Of a stretch of 64,000 bases of DNA, positions 30,563 to 46,455 are shown piece by piece; position 1 is the first letter of the stretch; every line of letters starts with the position of its first letter. A program made the translations under genes and the position numbers. Where the stretch lies: sequence record PP456877.1; one strand, 5' to 3'. The notes below the pieces were generated by a model. That model was not told the origin of the DNA and made no database searches. It saw only the letters and a program-made list of their open reading frames with translations.

Positions 30563-30824
30563 AAAAACTATAACTATGTATTTCCTCGCCAGTATCTAAT
30601 TTAATAGAGACCACTTCACCTTCAATAACTGTGAAAATAAATTTAGTATCAGGTGAAACATAATCACCAGTTACATAGACATTATCAGGAAGATACAATA
30701 GTCGTGTTTGATTATCGTGTTTAAGTTCTATTCCATCTGTACTATTAAAATACATATATCCCGTACCATCTGGACTTTTTTGAAACATCTTTAGTTTATT
30801 TGGTACGAGTAGATCAATTGACAT
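30489..30824 (-). CDS. Hypothetical protein
   Basis: AGGAG RBS; 111-aa ORF. Confidence 0.7.
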   Translation of the reverse strand: MSIDLLVPNKLKMFQKSPDGTGYMYFNSTDGIELKHDNQTRLLYLPDNVYVTGDYVSPDTKFIFTVIEGEVVSIKLDTGEEIHSYSFCDESPLWNHPHIAFYVKENTDAIN

Positions 30825-30875
30825 AGATCTCTCCTAAACGATAGAAGAGAGCCCCTGTACGGGACTCTCATTTAT

Positions 30876-31487
30876 TTAACCTAGAAGATTACCTACGACT
30901 GAAGTTGGATCTTCTTCACCTGCGTCCAGATGCCCATCAATAGCATTCCACATACGGATGATGTCAACTTTTTCATGCAGACTAAGTTTACGATCACTCT
31001 TGATATCTTCGTGATAGTTTTTATAACCGAATTCTTTCTTATCGGTATACATAACTCCATCCATCACGCGACGATAATCAAACTGTCGTTCACCTACTGC
31101 ATCACCTTGGATGTTATTATAAGAACCACTATATCCATCAACTTCATTATTAAGATACATAGTTCTTAGACGCTCATGCGCCATAACCCAACGTTGCATA
31201 ATCGGACCAGCTGTTTGTAGTTCAGCTAAAGTCTCAAGATACACAATGTTGTTCGACTGCCATAAATTATCTTTCTTTGTGGTTAGATTCCGCAGTGCTT
31301 GAACAGCAGCTGATTCACTAATCATACTGTACATATTTTGTGCAGTATTGAAAAAGCTAGCAGCAGCAGTTGACATAGTTGAACGCAGTGCCTGACTACG
31401 CTCACCCAACCATTGGGTTGTTTGCTGTGTAAGATGGCCACCTGCACAGATGTCCAAGAGGTCTACACCATGTGCATCTACAATCAT
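30876..31487 (-). CDS. Conserved protein at phiKZ gp59 position (possibly import factor Imp3)
   Basis: 203-aa ORF. The Imp3 assignment is from recalled gene numbering only. Confidence 0.55.
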   Translation of the reverse strand: MIVDAHGVDLLDICAGGHLTQQTTQWLGERSQALRSTMSTAAASFFNTAQNMYSMISESAAVQALRNLTTKKDNLWQSNNIVYLETLAELQTAGPIMQRWVMAHERLRTMYLNNEVDGYSGSYNNIQGDAVGERQFDYRRVMDGVMYTDKKEFGYKNYHEDIKSDRKLSLHEKVDIIRMWNAIDGHLDAGEEDPTSVVGNLLG

Positions 31488-31543
31488 TATTCACCTCAGA
31501 TACTGTACTCATATACCCAGCACAGATTAAATAGACGTTGCAT
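31443..31543 (-). repeat. Copy B of a 101-nt diverged direct repeat (15-aa stub ORF 31496..31543 + start of the gp59-like gene)
   Basis: Ungapped alignment to 31809..31909, 76/101 identical by hand count. Confidence 0.85.
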
Positions 31544-31556
31544 AATAGGTTACCTC

Positions 31557-31739
31557 TTAAAGCTTAGAGATCATTTCGACATATGCATCGACAAACCTTC
31601 TGTTTACCACTACATCACCATTCCCACGAGTGATATATCTCCCAGTTAATATAGCTACCGATCTGGCTTCACGTTCATCTCGTTCGGCTTGTGATAAACG
31701 TTCCGGGTTACGTCGAATAATTTCACGAATATTAGACAT
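31557..31739 (-). CDS. 60-aa Arg-rich early protein lying between the repeats
   Basis: AAGGGG RBS; downstream of an early-type promoter. Confidence 0.7.
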   Translation of the reverse strand: MSNIREIIRRNPERLSQAERDEREARSVAILTGRYITRGNGDVVVNRRFVDAYVEMISKL

Positions 31740-31770
31740 TGGATATTCCCCTTATCACTATTGCACCTTA

Positions 31771-31795
31771 GTGATATAAATCTGAAATTGAATTC
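31771..31795 (-). promoter_or_regulatory. Early-type promoter
   Basis: TTTCAGATTTATATCAC, variant of the motif. Confidence 0.55.
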
Positions 31796-31808
31796 AGTGT
31801 AACTTCAC

Positions 31809-31909
31809 GGCACAGCTGTTCAAGAGATCCACACCATGGGCGTCTATAATCATTATACACTTCAGTTATTGGCTGTATATGACCAACATAGATTAAACGG
31901 ATGTTGTAT
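31809..31909 (-). repeat. Copy A of the repeat (end of 31862..32287 + truncated gp59-like stub 31794..31853)
   Basis: Encodes ...QHPFNLCWSY* then MIIDAHGVDLLNSCAVKLH*. Confidence 0.85.
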
Positions 31910-32287
31910 AGGTAGGTTAAATGTGTCTAGTTCCTGACCGATCCAATTGATAGCTTTTGTAACACCTTCAACAGTTACAGTTAATTCAACATGGATATCA
32001 TGTTCAGGTGCAGTCACCACAATAGTGATTGGATCATCATGTTTAATACGGAATCCAAACTTAGGGTGATGGAATCCCGCATATTCACCTTTAGTATTTT
32101 CTAGAATACATTCAAATAGATTAGTTTCTTTATTAAGTTTAAATGTAACTAGTTTATCTGAATCTTTAAGTAAACCATTATCCCCAAATACATTGAATCG
32201 ATAATGCTTATGGCAGATACCAAGTGTTTTTGGTACATCATGGGAATTATCGATTTGCTTAGTACATTCATTACATTTACTATTCAT
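31862..32287 (-). CDS. Hypothetical protein with N-terminal CxxC...C-H motif
   Basis: KCNECT...GICHKH. Confidence 0.7.
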   Translation of the reverse strand: MNSKCNECTKQIDNSHDVPKTLGICHKHYRFNVFGDNGLLKDSDKLVTFKLNKETNLFECILENTKGEYAGFHHPKFGFRIKHDDPITIVVTAPEHDIHVELTVTVEGVTKAINWIGQELDTFNLPIQHPFNLCWSYTANN

Positions 32288-32299
32288 CCTTATTTACCT

Positions 32300-32683
32300 T
32301 TAATAAATTTGCTTATCAAAAGAGCAATTAATTGGGATAGTGATAACTTCATTAGTAACTACATGTTTACCTGTCTTTTTAAAGAATTGTGCAAATTTTG
32401 AAGTAGCTGGAATTACAAAGGTATCATCCCGATCATTATTTGACATATTGTACAGAGTAAATTTACCGTCTAAATCAAACCTAATTTGCCATTCAATATC
32501 ACGTACTTTGAAATCTATACCAAACCTTAAGTGATCATCAATTAATTCAGAACCACCGTATTCATAAGCTCCGGTGAAATTCCAATTAATTTCTGCAAAT
32601 TGGAAAGTTACAGGATGTTCACCATATTCATCTTGTATATAGTAACCATCATGAGCTTTCCAATAGATAACTAAATCATGCAT
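32300..32683 (-). CDS. Hypothetical protein
   Basis: 127-aa ORF. Confidence 0.7.
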   Translation of the reverse strand: MHDLVIYWKAHDGYYIQDEYGEHPVTFQFAEINWNFTGAYEYGGSELIDDHLRFGIDFKVRDIEWQIRFDLDGKFTLYNMSNNDRDDTFVIPATSKFAQFFKKTGKHVVTNEVITIPINCSFDKQIY

Positions 32684-32703
32684 GCTACCAGCCTCAAAGA
32701 AAT

Positions 32704-32728
32704 AATAGGGGAGTTAGACTCCCCTATT
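32704..32728 (-). terminator. Hairpin after the nvRNAP beta' gene
   Basis: AATAGGGGAGT-TAG-ACTCCCCTATT. Confidence 0.7.
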
Positions 32729-32731
32729 AAT

Positions 32732-32935
32732 TTATTTTGCTTTTAGCCATTCTTCTAATGGCGGTAAATATTTCTCATGTGCCCAGTTAATAATTGTTTC
32801 TACAACAGGACCCTGTAATTCAAGGTTACCTGAGATTTCATGTGGTTCATCAATAGATAGAACCCATGTATGTGGCGCAATGCGTTCAGTTGCTTTAGTT
32901 AGATACACATCAGGCATTAACGTTAAATTAAGTTG
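32732..32935 (-). CDS. nvRNAP beta' N-terminal subunit (gp55/56.1), exon 4
   Basis: QLNLTLMPD...WLKAK*; begins right after the terminal G of intron 3 and continues DFDGD-Q as in RpoC. Confidence 0.9.
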   Translation of the reverse strand, partial: QLNLTLMPDVYLTKATERIAPHTWVLSIDEPHEISGNLELQGPVVETIINWAHEKYLPPLEEWLKAK

Positions 32936-33323
32936 CACTATCTTCGTACAGCATCGTCAGCATCATGTCTAAAAATCATCCATTGGAAGACATGTCGCTG
33001 CTGTACCGTCCACTTAATATCTCCCGACATTAAGTAACTGCTCTAGCTTTCACTAGATGGTGAGACTATATCTTCTTCCCAGAGGGAAGCCTTCTATTTC
33101 GGATCACTTAATCCTACTCTACTCCCTTGTCTGCTTTCGCAGTGGTTTCGATAGTCGTTGAACGTTCTTCCTATATTGCCTTACGGTAATACGTAGAAGC
33201 TTCGCTGCTGATTGTCCAATCCTAACACTTTTCAAACCGTTACATTTTAGCTTTCGCTATCTGCTTTGGTAGTTAGGCTCTAAGGAGGTTCCAGCAATTA
33301 AGAAGGTTAGGAGACCAATTAAA
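32936..33323 (-). mobile_element. Group I intron 3 (388 nt, no ORF)
   Basis: P AAUUGCUGG, Q AAUCAGCAG, R GUUCAACGACUA (33152-33163), S GAAGAUAUAGUC (33064-33075); exon GGAGAU pairs with IGS GUCUCC; ends in G. Confidence 0.92.
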
Positions 33324-33341
33324 ATCTCCGTCAAAATCAGC
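33324..33341 (-). CDS. nvRNAP beta' exon 3: 18-nt micro-exon encoding ADFDGD
   Basis: GCT GAT TTT GAC GGA GAT, between an intron-terminal G and a U-ending 5' splice site. Confidence 0.92.
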
Positions 33342-34714
33342 CGTGTTGTTCAGTATCAGTCGTTAATTGATACCCGCACCATTACGTGCAGCTCTAGCTT
33401 TCACTAGAAGACCAGACTATATCTTCACCCTTCCTTTCGGAGTGGGGTGTCTCCCATTTCGAGTCACTTGACCCTACATCCTATTTCTAGGACCGGTGCA
33501 CCTGATACCGTAATAGTCGTTGAACCTTCTCCTATTCCTAAATGGAATGTTACGGAGCTTGGCTGCTGATTGGCCCTACCTAATCTTTTTCAAACCTTGG
33601 CTTTGTCTTTCGACTCGCAGTGGTAGATTAGTTTAACAGGATATCCCAGCAATTAGAGAGAACTCAACCCAACGATTACTCATTGGGGGAACTAGACTTG
33701 ATTAACTTAATAAGGTATTTATCAAGCACCCCATTCTTTTCAAAGATTGCTCTTCGAACAGTATTCGGATGCTTAATACCGACATCTCTTGCAAAGTGTG
33801 GAATACTCGGATACACTTTGGTAGTGTTCAAGATGGTGTCAGTTACTTCAATTGGAGTACCTTTTCCATTACTAGGTTTTCCAAATGAGGCTTCAATTTC
33901 TTTTTGAGTGTATTTAGGAAAATCTTCAGGATTAGCGGTATATGAGAATACCAAACCATCCATGATTTCCTTACTACCTCTAACTAGATGGTAATAGGCT
34001 TTATTACGTTTAGTACCTAGTGCAAGTTCCATTTCAGCTAAGTTATGAAACACATGTAATGTCTTAGTCTTATAGTCTAAAACATAAACTGTCTTGGTAC
34101 TATCTCGATCAGCAATCTTAGTCTCACCGGTAATAAATTCAAATGTGAATCTATTTCTATACGGCTTAGTCTTATGATCACGTATAATAACCCAAACCGT
34201 ATTTTTATTAACTCCTAATGCCCGAGCAAGTTCACTCATCGAGTAATAAGTAGTCTTTTCACCAGTGGTAACATCAGTTGCAATTACTCGTCTATTTTCT
34301 TTTCTTAATCCATTTTTGTAAGCATGTTCTAAGTTTTCACCACGAGTCATCCACTCCAAATTAGATGGTAGATTATTATGTTTGTTGCCGTCTTTATGAT
34401 TGACTTCATAATTTGGTCCAGGTGATGGACCATGGAATGCAGTACAGATTAGAATATGTGATAATGTAGAATTACTTCTGCCATTATCATTCTTTGCACC
34501 TAGCTTCAGATATGAACCAGTTGAGGTAGGTACTTTGTATAACTTACATATCCTGTTTAACCGCTTATGACGAATTGTTCCTAGGTTACTAGCTTCATAT
34601 GCTGAGTATCCAGGAATATCCCGCCATTAAATTTTAAATGAAGCCGGATCAAAGACGGACACTACTCCGTTTTGTTCCATTGTTTTTACCCTTATTTAGT
34701 TATTTGCTTATCCG
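33342..34714 (-). mobile_element. Group I intron 2 (1373 nt) with HNH ORF in the P1 loop
   Basis: P and Q present, R at 33514-33525, S at 33415-33426; exon CCUAAU pairs with GUUGGG located just after the HNH stop. Confidence 0.92.
33676..34680 (-). pseudogene. NUMOD4-HNH homing endonuclease with in-frame TAA at codon 18
   Basis: MEQNGVVSVFDPASFKI*WRDIPGYSAYEASNLGTIR...HILICTAFHG...VNHKDGNKHNNLPSNLEW followed by three NUMOD1/IENR1-like repeats; TAA at 34627-34629. Confidence 0.85.
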
Positions 34715-34822: not shown

Positions 34823-35172
34823 CAATATCTTCAGTTAGTTCGTTAGGCTAACCCGCACCATTACGTGCAGCTCTAGCTCTCGCTAGACGTTGAGACTATA
34901 TCTTCACCTTTGGCTTTACCCAGTAAGGTGCTTCCCACTTCGAGTCCACTTGGACCCTACGTGCCAATGCACTAGTCGTTGAACTTTATCCATACCTTTC
35001 GGGTTAGGATCTTAGCTGCTGATTGACTCTATTCAGTTATTCTTAAGCATTCATAGAACCTTTCGGAACTATTGTAGCTAACTGACCTAACGAGTTGTTC
35101 CAGCAATTCAAGAAGTTTTGTCGAGCATCATTTCTGATACAAGGAAACCATTTAGTATTGATATACAAATTA
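34823..35172 (-). mobile_element. Group I intron 1 (350 nt, no ORF)
   Basis: P and Q present, R at 34973-34984, S at 34894-34905; exon GAAAU pairs with IGS GUUUC; ends in G. Confidence 0.92.
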
Positions 35173-36704: not shown

Positions 36705-38585
36705 TTAGTACCAGGTACCCGGTGCATTATAGGAAGGAGCGCCGTAAGTTTGACCCATGCTGCCAGCCATGCCAACTTGTGCACTACCAGAAACAGCCAT
36801 GTTACCCATACCGGTGTAACCAGCGAAGCGCTGTTGACCGAAGTTGGTAATTAGGTTTTCCATGGTTACAGTTACACCAGCTGCTGCTGCTGCGGCATCC
36901 ATTGCAGTGATGAATTTCGGGTTAAAGGTTAGACGACGAGCACGACCAGTATAGGTAACGTTACCTAGGTACATCTTGTCGAAGCCTTTACTGTTATTCA
37001 TACGACGCACAATGTGGTCATTACCTACCTGAGTAGCATACCAGGTCTTCCACTCTTGGTCATTACCTTCAGACATGTTCATGGCACCTAGAACGTCAAG
37101 ATCACGACGGTCGCTTAGTTCGCCATGCTCATCAGTGTAGTGACCGAGGTCTACTTCATGATGGTTGTCAAAGATAATCGGACCAGCTTCAGCTAGGTTA
37201 TAGAACTGACGGAAATCAGTGCCGTATAGGTTAGTTAGAGCTTGGAAGATCAGGCTAACTGCACGAGCTTGGTTTACGCCACCAGCTGCATCTAGGATGA
37301 CTTGCTCAATAGCTGAGTTGTCGCCCATTGGATCGATATCGATCTGGAATGCAGGGTTCTGGTTAACCATCTTGTTCATTAGCATTACGAAGTTGCTGTC
37401 GTCTGCCATGAATGCTTCGGTGCGAGTTTCAATCGCTTTACCTAGCTCTGAGTAATAACCAAGTGCACCAATATCACGCATCTTGCTAGTAGCGATCTTC
37501 GGCATTAGGGTACGAGCCCATGCCTGGGATGCAGTTGCACGATACGCATTACCGAGTGCGAACAGCCACATTTCTAGAGTCCATGCTTGGATCCAGGATG
37601 CCTTACGAACGTCAGTGATAACGATGTAAGGAGTGAACTGCGGAGGTAGAGCTGCACCAGGTAGAGTTACGCCAAACATACCTTGTTGCTGGCCAGTGGT
37701 CGGAGTCCAATGTAGATCTACGAATAGACTAACTTGGTTTAGCTGACTATCGGTATCATAGAACTCGTTCTCAGGTACGTTGGTTTTCTTACCACGGCTA
37801 GTGGAGATGACCATGTCAGAACGGATCGGATTACCACAGCTATCTTTAACCGGAATACCATTGTAGTCTAGGTTGCAGGTAAGCTGTTCGTTTTCTGCTT
37901 TGATGTGGGTCGCAATAGAGAACGGAGTCTCATTGTTACGACGTGCAATAGCATCTTCACAGATGTTAACAGATTCAACTAGTAGGTTCTTAACAGCTAG
38001 TTCATCTTTGAAGTCGAAGTCAGCATACACTGCACGTGGACCGGCAGATAGTACTTCTAGACCAGGGATGTTGTAACGGTTCCGTAGGAACTCGCCGATC
38101 TTGCTCCAGTATTGAGCAGTGAATACATCACGCGGTAGTACCTTCTCTTCAATGATGTCATCAGTTAGACCATTGTTGATTTTGTGGGTACGGGGACGGA
38201 TGCGAGTACCAGGTAGGTTATCGAGTACTAGAGTACGAACGAATGCCTTCATGGAACCATTGATATCTTTAGCTAGTTTAACAATGAGTAGACCAGCCAT
38301 ACCCACTTGTTGTGCATCGCGATCGAAACGATGGATATCGAAGTCATCAGGTAGGTCCTGATGGCGGATTGCTTCTTCTTTTACTTTAGTGAATACTTGT
38401 AGGGCATCTGCTGAACGAGCATCAGAGCCATCTAGCCGACCAGAGCGACGCATTAGATGGTTAATGCCAGTAGTGGACCCAGGTGCGCCAGCCGGACGTT
38501 GAGCTTGACGTTGTGCAGTGGGTTGCGGAGCCGGAGCGGTAGCTTGAGTTTGAACGGTGCCGATTTCGTTTTCGTTAACAGCCAT
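36705..38585 (-). CDS. chmA: Chimallin, major phage-nucleus shell protein (phiKZ gp54)
   Basis: Recognised sequence and size (626 aa); position upstream of nvRNAP beta'; strong high-expression codon bias. Confidence 0.9.
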
Positions 38586-38657
38586 TTTAAATACCTTTAC
38601 GATTATGGTTTCTTGATCAAGAAGAACCTAAGTACTTAGTATACTAGATTCAATTTA

Positions 38658-38681
38658 GTAATATAAATCTCAAATTTTTTT
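38658..38681 (-). promoter_or_regulatory. Early promoter of chmA
   Basis: AAAAAAATTTGAGATTTATATTAC. Confidence 0.75.
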
Positions 38682-46187: not shown

Positions 46188-46455
46188 CGAGAAGTTCTAT
46201 TAGTTTATGCATGAAATGAATGTCTTTAGCATATTCATAGAACATTTCTTCTTTAACGACCATTTGCATAAGCTTCTGTTCTGCCAATGCAACAAGCAAA
46301 TGCATTGCTTCGATATAACTAATATCTAAAAAGTCCAATACAAATCTTAGATAGTTATCATCTTTAATAAGTTTACTTTTAGTCGCTCTTAGTAAAAAAC
46401 GAGGTTGTGGTGTGGGTAATGGTGACGTATAGATCTTCTGGTTTCTCAGTATCAT
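46003..46455 (-). CDS. Hypothetical protein
   Basis: ORF in an overlapping array; start uncertain. Confidence 0.6.
   Translation of the reverse strand: MILRNQKIYTSPLPTPQPRFLLRATKSKLIKDDNYLRFVLDFLDISYIEAMHLLVALAEQKLMQMVVKEEMFYEYAKDIHFMHKLIELLDEGAEQIMHLIPTNTKELWYETEARDGLYIGGSTTSGICIANRSGIPTINHIDKEIYLPNK

Follow-up and report, generated by a model that had tools for sequence, protein, structure and literature searches.

A duplicated gene junction around a promoter and a small gene upstream of imp3 in phiKZ-like phages, a probable recombination scar

Morons are independent units of a promoter, a gene and in some cases a terminator that lie between two phage genes and are missing in close relatives; the concept comes from lambdoid phages. 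Template-switch insertions of the microhomology-mediated break-induced replication (MMBIR) or fork stalling and template switching (FoSTeS) type carry flanking duplications. The moron concept has been discussed for the transcription units of phage phiKZ (PMC10914365). Illegitimate or homeologous recombination has been described as a source of phage mosaicism (Martinsohn et al. 2008, PMC2327257), and the promoter-early stem-loop (PeSL) cassettes of T4-type phages mediate modular shuffling and mini-circles (Arbiol et al. 2010, PMC2839356). Here we describe a locus with likenesses to each of these systems in a window of 64,000 nt from sequence record PP456877.1. The region corresponds to Pseudomonas phage vB_Pae3705-KEN49 (100% identity) and is 97% identical to phiKZ. 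At this locus, the junction between gp58 and gp59 occurs twice, and between the copies stand an early-type promoter and a 60-aa open reading frame (ORF), PHIKZ058.1, referred to below as p18. The gp59 gene is imp3 (orf59), whose product is a core and apparently essential factor in protein import into the phage nucleus (bioRxiv 10.1101/2024.03.27.586873; 10.1101/2025.11.23.690004). The repeat is probably the scar of a recombination event.

The two copies of the junction are 101 nt long, lie 366 nt apart and align without gaps (Table 1). A repeat finder reports 76% identity, and a direct count gives 77 identical positions of 101. When the 2.5-kb region was shuffled 100 times, the best match over 101 nt averaged 49 identities and never exceeded 53; copy A matches copy B of phiKZ with a BLAST E value of 9e-19. 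Copy A consists of the C-terminus of gp58 (...QHPFNLCWSYTANN), its TGA, 8 nt and an ATG that opens a 19-codon stub (MIIDAHGVDLLNSCAVKLH, then a stop). In copy B, the 8-nt spacer contains the ribosome-binding site of imp3. A preliminary description, made from the letters of this stretch, had noted the diverged junction duplication, the readings of both copies and the promoter and small ORF between them. All of these were borne out, including the readings, with which the minus-strand translations agree. Its suggestion that the gp59-like gene might be Imp3 is settled by the published identity of orf59.

Three allelic states were found in a census of 47 Phikzvirus records, which were scored via gene maps. 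State 1, the KEN49 arrangement, is present in 14 records representing 12 phages, including phiKZ, KTN4, OMKO1 and SL2. In state 2 (26 records, among them PA7 and U5), gp58 and gp59 are separated by 8 nt and a 249-nt unit carrying the promoter and p18 lies between gp56.1 and gp57, about 1 kb away. State 0, with no cassette anywhere, accounts for the other seven records, including 6B, 124.01 and PA02. A single gp58/gp59 junction with the genes 8 nt apart is therefore the arrangement of 33 of the 47 records. A search for this allele in relatives had been set beforehand as the check on a recombination footprint, and its presence upholds that interpretation. Likewise, the second site in 26 records confirms that the promoter and ORF form a separable cassette. 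In alignment, the single-junction allele corresponds to the left part of copy A and the right part of copy B.

The alternative site lies just upstream of terminator T2, at about position 32747. As T2 follows the unit there, the arrangement is a complete promoter-gene-terminator unit. The insert of PA7 and U5 measures 338 nt and comprises a second terminator (T1), the promoter, p18 and a variant end of gp56.1; state 2 also shows a short imperfect duplication of the gp56.1 end, of about 14-20 nt. The 249-nt unit is common to the phages with a cassette between gp56.1 and gp57. State 1 and state 2 cassettes are separated by six fixed differences, so each state has a single origin. Two of five inspected state-2 phages, PA7 (L003:3087-3335) and KEN19 (L024), have a nonsense codon in p18 (CGA to TGA at codon 20), and the gene carries no annotation in either. 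The 16 state-2 records of the 87%-identity class probably share this codon. In U5, GUMS and Wadjak1, p18 is intact at 62 aa; the U5 gene is mislabelled "portal vertex protein".

Comparison with the single-junction alleles indicates where the two copies have changed. In copy A, the gp58-tail half departs from them at 1-4 of 56 positions, and the orphan imp3-head half at 7-9 of 45. For copy B, the orphan gp58-tail half differs at 10-13 of 56 positions and the imp3 half at 1-2 of 45. The changes gather in the orphan halves (copy B, Fisher p = 0.003-0.06; copy A, 0.02-0.21). This distribution matches relaxed selection after duplication and would fit decay following the event better than two diverged parents, without proving it. 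Many of the differences between the copies had been described as synonymous. This is apt for the gp59-head half, with third codon positions accounting for five of eight differences (p = 0.09), but not for the gp58-tail half, where first, second and third positions have 3, 7 and 5 differences and the last six residues differ.

Diverged relatives of p18 were located in metagenome assemblies by word and profile searches. Four lineages (L025, L026, L040 and L041/L042) encode a 60-aa homologue with 66-83% amino acid identity, 10-16 nt upstream of an Imp3 homologue. The latter are 203-204 aa long and 46-51% identical to gp59. The same promoter motif precedes p18 in L025, L026 and L041. Between KEN49 and L025, amino acid identity is 83% for p18 and 49% for Imp3; the p18 genes are 76% identical in DNA, with saturated synonymous divergence (dS) and a ratio of nonsynonymous to synonymous divergence (dN/dS) of 0.07. 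In comparisons of p18 with L025 and L026, dS is at least 1.25, with three of six pairs incalculable, and dN/dS is 0.06-0.11 where estimable. A recent horizontal transfer of p18, as might be read from its 83% amino acid identity to L025, is ruled out by the 76% nucleotide identity and saturated dS. Given this saturation and the adjacency in four diverged lineages, the linkage of p18 and imp3 is therefore old and not due to recent transfer. Judged from these comparisons, p18 is an old and strongly constrained gene and an ancestral neighbour of imp3. The proposal that gp59 had been given a new promoter is thereby overturned, as the four relatives keep p18 in this position and three of them the promoter motif.

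A second context class of p18 was also observed in these assemblies. Homologues of 59-65 aa and approximately 60-65% identity (L027:101-280, L033:3001-3192, L036:3001-3198, L037:567-758, L039:3001-3186) are found on GC-richer contigs of up to 267 kb. In this class the downstream gene, some 40-50 nt away, is always a DUF1353 gene (phrog_1158, "tail assembly chaperone") and not imp3. A hairpin-like sequence between p18 and the DUF1353 gene is conserved.

Both edges of the KEN49 cassette carry relics of earlier neighbours. On the left, 20 of 27 nt match the promoter lead-in and the end of a 171-aa gene of L025, termed gene X, which ends in VKFS and a stop; gene X has no detectable homology to gp58. 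On the right, the 20 nt that follow the p18 stop correspond to the start of a relative's imp3, namely its ribosome-binding site and ATG CAA. fMGyn-Pae01 retains ACCTATGCAATAT exactly as in L025, and its stub B starts with MQY like the Imp3 proteins of the relatives. The gp58 tail includes CCTATGCAAC, and the right joint therefore falls in a 9-nt microhomology, CCTATGCAA, common to the source imp3 start and the gp58 tail. The left joint is beside a TGTG/GTG motif. A 36-nt spacer left of the PA7-type cassette was considered as a longer relic and rejected, since its similarity to gene X and to the 5' end of gp59 is not significant. The PA7-type left flank also gave no match to L025 or L026.

On the basis of these features, we consider it probable that the 101-nt repeat is a staggered-joint scar, formed when a piece of an older promoter-p18-imp3 arrangement was joined into a genome in which gp58 abutted imp3. 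The piece would have measured about 271 nt and extended from the last codons of gene X through the first codons of the source imp3. The host genome would have been exited at imp3 codon 15 and re-entered 101 nt upstream, in the gp58 tail, which would leave a gp58-tail/imp3-head junction on both sides. Joining may have occurred through two template switches in replication or repair, or through two illegitimate crossovers between co-infecting phages. Thereafter, the half of each copy that still serves a full-length gene would have been conserved and the orphan half would have drifted. State 2 may represent a differently trimmed capture from a similar source. It would have kept more on the left (the variant polymerase tail, T1 and the 36-nt spacer) and less on the right, where p18 ends in ...KLND and a stop. 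The "sharp" 249-nt unit would simply be the overlap of the two captures.

Several observations weigh against this origin. The expected source arrangement, in which the tail of the non-virion RNA polymerase (nvRNAP) gene is followed by T1, the promoter, p18 and imp3, was not found in any collection searched. Of two pattern scans of metagenomes for it, the first gave no match and the second three unrelated AT-rich matches. The single-junction phages could be deletion products rather than precursors, with state 0 being either ancestral or itself a deletion product. No clean microhomology is present at the left joint, and a few extra bases there are unexplained. Changes in stub B are also uneven: 8 of 18 nt are changed in the last six codons as opposed to 1-4 of 27 earlier, and in some haplotypes the first nine codons hardly depart from copy A. 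Uniform drift would not predict such unevenness, and gene conversion from copy A or a pre-existing PA02-like gp58 tail would. Finally, the third-position enrichment of stub A (p ~0.08-0.09) could be a sign of coding constraint or of descent from a diverged coding allele.

The best-surviving alternative, which we regard as rather unlikely, is that two already diverged phiKZ-type parents each contributed one copy of the junction, so that left parent, cassette source and right parent were joined and the 24% difference pre-dates the event. The preliminary description had likewise invoked two diverged parental phages. PA02 lends this some weight: its full-length gp58 ends in the stub-B tail WVYEYSI and a stop, a working C-terminus there, and the body of its gp59 is identical to that of KEN49. 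The strongly mosaic flanks of the locus among phages and the lean of stub A differences to third codon positions point the same way. However, PA02 is equally explained as a deletion by exchange between the copies. Furthermore, the gp58 tail of copy A hardly differs from any other Phikzvirus allele, in contrast to the imp3 head next to it, and in both copies the divergence switches exactly at the boundary between functional and orphan halves. The stub-B tail has its match in PA02 gp58. None of the Phikzvirus sampled carries an imp3 head resembling stub A. Two parents are not needed for the 24% divergence, since the differences lie almost entirely in the orphan halves and fit drift, though this is not proven. 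PA02 is either a deletion product or the descendant of a parent with the stub-B tail; whichever applies, exchange involving copies A and B has taken place in nature. We also observed that PA02 gp57 appears disrupted, with only a 147-nt ORF annotated in an interval of the same length (L009 2556-3001).

Another explanation, compatible with a scar origin, is that the stubs are kept for function. On this view, stub B would act as a leader ORF, passing on translational coupling, and stub A would be a micropeptide copying the N-terminus of Imp3. In favour of this, each of the 12 state-1 phages has both ORFs uninterrupted and with a start codon, the spacing from stop to start is always 8-13 nt, and none of the ten differences among stub A haplotypes is at a second codon position. 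Published imp3 escape mutations are located 10 bp upstream of the ATG (bioRxiv 10.1101/2024.03.27.586873); on our reading, this position is the G common to the TGA stop of stub B and the GAGG ribosome-binding site. Stub B also retains the spacing of stop, 8 nt and ATG by which gp58 is coupled to imp3 in phages with one junction, and it may have a leader-ORF role. Nevertheless, the stub A sequences of the 12 phages fall into three haplotypes, with up to 10 of 57 nt differing between them. With only 3-4 independent haplotypes, open frames of 15-19 codons are expected by chance, and single-junction phages do without both stubs. Selection for function is thus improbable as an account of the stubs.

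An autonomous mobile element of transposon-like or homing type, duplicating its target site on insertion, is a very improbable reading of the cassette: although the 249-nt unit occupies two sites with some target duplication at each and there is an HNH homing endonuclease gene at a distance of about 2 kb, the unit has no transposase, integrase or endonuclease gene (p18 has 60 aa and its family matches are phage ORFans only), no terminal inverted repeats were detected by the repeat finder, the duplication lengths vary (101 nt versus about 14-20 nt) as they do not in a transposon, each site has a single origin given the fixed differences between cassette groups, and the sharp ends reflect two differently trimmed captures, one extending further left (state 2) and the other further right (state 1).

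How the locus compares with the described systems follows from these results. Like a moron, the KEN49 cassette is a small gene with its own promoter, which stands between gp58 and gp59 in some Phikzvirus and not in others, and at the alternative site the unit is complete with terminator. Unlike a moron, it lacks its own terminator in KEN49 and would feed the essential imp3 operon downstream. As the ancestral neighbour of imp3 in diverged relatives, it would also be no foreign addition, and it carries the relics and the 101-nt flank duplication. With respect to foreign origin, the edge relics show capture from another arrangement, yet the adjacency of p18 and imp3 is old in the wider clade. The illegitimate-recombination and template-switch models agree with the joints at short microhomologies, with a templated insert flanked by target duplication and with retention of a viable product, as both flanking genes are intact. 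The mechanism proposed at KEN49 is read from the sequence.

The resemblance to PeSL cassettes lies in the setting. In both cases a hyperplastic region is found between conserved genes of a large virulent phage, near-identical early promoters are repeated, and small non-essential ORFs come and go. The KEN49 joints, in contrast, are in gp58 and imp3 coding sequence at microhomologies rather than at a promoter or stem-loop; the repeat is a duplicated gene junction and not a regulatory cassette, and the unit at the gp58/gp59 site has no stem-loop. It was also observed that near-identical early promoters could act as recombination sites, as PeSLs do in T4-type phages. Overall, the locus is a moron-like unit within a recombination scar, and as an example of mosaic evolution in phages it is clear though not out of the ordinary.

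The promoter matches in sequence the phiKZ early class used by the virion RNA polymerase, which is defined by a conserved AT-rich element about 10 bp upstream of a mapped start and by activity early in infection. A 12-mer from it, TTTATATYACTA, occurs twice in the 64 kb, where chance would give 0.11 occurrences. Its other copy precedes the chmA/gp54 ORF by about 70 nt, and the chmA and p18 promoters have the 22-mer AATTTSAGATTTATATYACTAA in common. The p18 motif thus matches in sequence the promoter of PHIKZ054, which has been mapped as early (PMC8244752). No terminator-like hairpin was found on the coding strand between p18 and imp3. In state 1, early transcripts of the virion RNA polymerase would run through p18 and the 15-codon stub into imp3, orf60 and orf61, and the unit most likely supplies early, autonomous imp3 transcription. 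In states 0 and 2, imp3 would have to rely on transcription through gp57 and gp58. A transcription start upstream of orf59 is cited in a transposon-sequencing preprint (bioRxiv 10.1101/2025.11.23.690004). In addition, p18-imp3-orf60-orf61 has been treated as an operon, the whole of which was needed for partial complementation of imp3 mutants (bioRxiv 10.1101/2024.03.27.586873). Contigs from four RNA runs of phiKZ-type infections are continuous over 30800-32858 with no joints; such contigs are blind to starts, ends and rare deletions.

As listed in Table 1, all genes of the locus are on the minus strand, in the transcription order gp56.1, T2, gp57, gp58, PHIKZ058.1, gp59, gp60 and gp61. The gp58 gene is restricted to Phikzvirus, with tblastn matches in the 47 Phikzvirus records only, and an IMG/VR scan with gp58 returned PA7 as its sole match. 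It is apparently essential according to the transposon-sequencing preprint (bioRxiv 10.1101/2025.11.23.690004). In phiHQ and PhiPA3, the nvRNAP gene gp55 is uninterrupted and adjoins imp3 with a gap of about 20 nt, so only the phiKZ group has the segment that runs from gp56 to p18. By this comparison, the stretch is a hyperplastic spot flanked by two conserved genes.

Table 1. Positions of the locus features, and of the chmA promoter, in the window
Feature	Position	Strand	Content or basis
gp59 (Imp3), 203 aa	30876..31487	minus	ORF; equals PHIKZ059; matches phrog_3254
Repeat copy B	31444..31544	minus	Orphan gp58-tail half (stub B), TGA, 8-nt spacer, first 15 codons of true imp3
Stub B ORF, 15 codons	31496..31543	minus	MQRLFNLCWVYEYSI, then stop; stop 8 nt ahead of imp3 ATG
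Right relic	31538..31559	minus	p18 stop, ribosome-binding site and source imp3 first codons ATG CAA; alignment with L025 and L026
PHIKZ058.1 (p18; locus tag PHIKZ_p18), 60 aa, Arg/Glu-rich	31557..31739	minus	ORF; phrog_31844 match
249-nt unit	31560..31808	minus	Gene X tail relic, promoter, 5' UTR and p18; BLAST against PA7 and alignment
phiKZ early-type (virion RNA polymerase) promoter motif	31767..31789	minus	AATTTCAGATTTATATCACTAA; sequence match
Left relic	31794..31808	minus	VKLH and stop (last four codons and stop of source gene X); in-frame fusion to imp3 codon 15
Stub A ORF, 19 codons	31794..31853	minus	imp3 codons 1-15 and gene X tail
Repeat copy A	31810..31910	minus	True gp58 C-terminus, TGA, 8-nt spacer, orphan imp3 head
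gp58, 141 aa	31862..32287	minus	ORF
Terminator T2, intrinsic	32703..32729	minus	Between gp56.1 and gp57
gp56.1	32732-32938	minus	C-terminal piece of nvRNAP subunit gp55; phrog_2987
chmA promoter	38649-38670	minus	Upstream of 626-aa ORF 36705-38585 (chmA/gp54)

Further features were noted in the neighbourhood. The nvRNAP gp55 gene contains three full-length matches to group I introns (Rfam RF00028, 76-89 bits) at 33041-33344, 33392-33713 and 34871-35170 on the minus strand. A stretch of 388 nt at 32936-33323, which is missing in phiKZ, splits the gp55 gene directly after ADFDGD. Splicing was considered as the cause of a loose end at 32923 in all RNA runs and rejected, because phiKZ, their source, is without the extra intron of KEN49. 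At the other end of the locus, the ribosome-binding site and first ~45 nt of imp3 (31440-31506) are 84% identical in DNA to positions 46233-46296 of Psa21 (NC_062581). Psa21 belongs to another genus and its Imp3 is only 53% identical at the protein level; the similarity at the 5' end may reflect local conservation or an exchange tract.

The p18 protein has no Pfam family match, and an Atlas search gave no hit. Its AlphaFold2 model (pLDDT 75) has a helix-helix-hairpin-helix fold, for which a Foldseek search of the PDB returned no significant match. The literature searched contains no mention of PHIKZ058.1 or of the junction duplication. The gene is dispensable in nature, because state 0 and nonsense alleles exist. 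We think it unlikely that p18 is a dedicated partner or regulator of Imp3 and that the 15-codon stub of the scar serves as a relay ORF keeping imp3 translation coupled. The idea arises because p18 lies 10-16 nt upstream of imp3 in at least five diverged lineages, evolves far more slowly than imp3 and is part of the sole complementing construct. If such a partnership were true, the natural allelic series would provide a ready-made genetic test, with p18 upstream of imp3, 1 kb away behind a terminator, disrupted by a nonsense codon, or absent.

The locus provides an unusually well-resolved example of a novel joint, in which both breakpoints, a microhomology, relics of earlier neighbours and later exchange between the copies are all visible. 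Its interest is moderate, and lies mainly in the regulation of an essential nuclear-import gene and in the natural allelic series. The promoter and p18 ahead of imp3 form a separable and naturally polymorphic unit, and the series of alleles lets one ask how imp3 is transcribed and whether p18 matters. This is relevant as Imp3 expression is hard to reconstitute, with the whole operon needed for the published complementation. The finding also cautions that an essential gene is regulated differently among therapeutic phiKZ-like phages that are close relatives.

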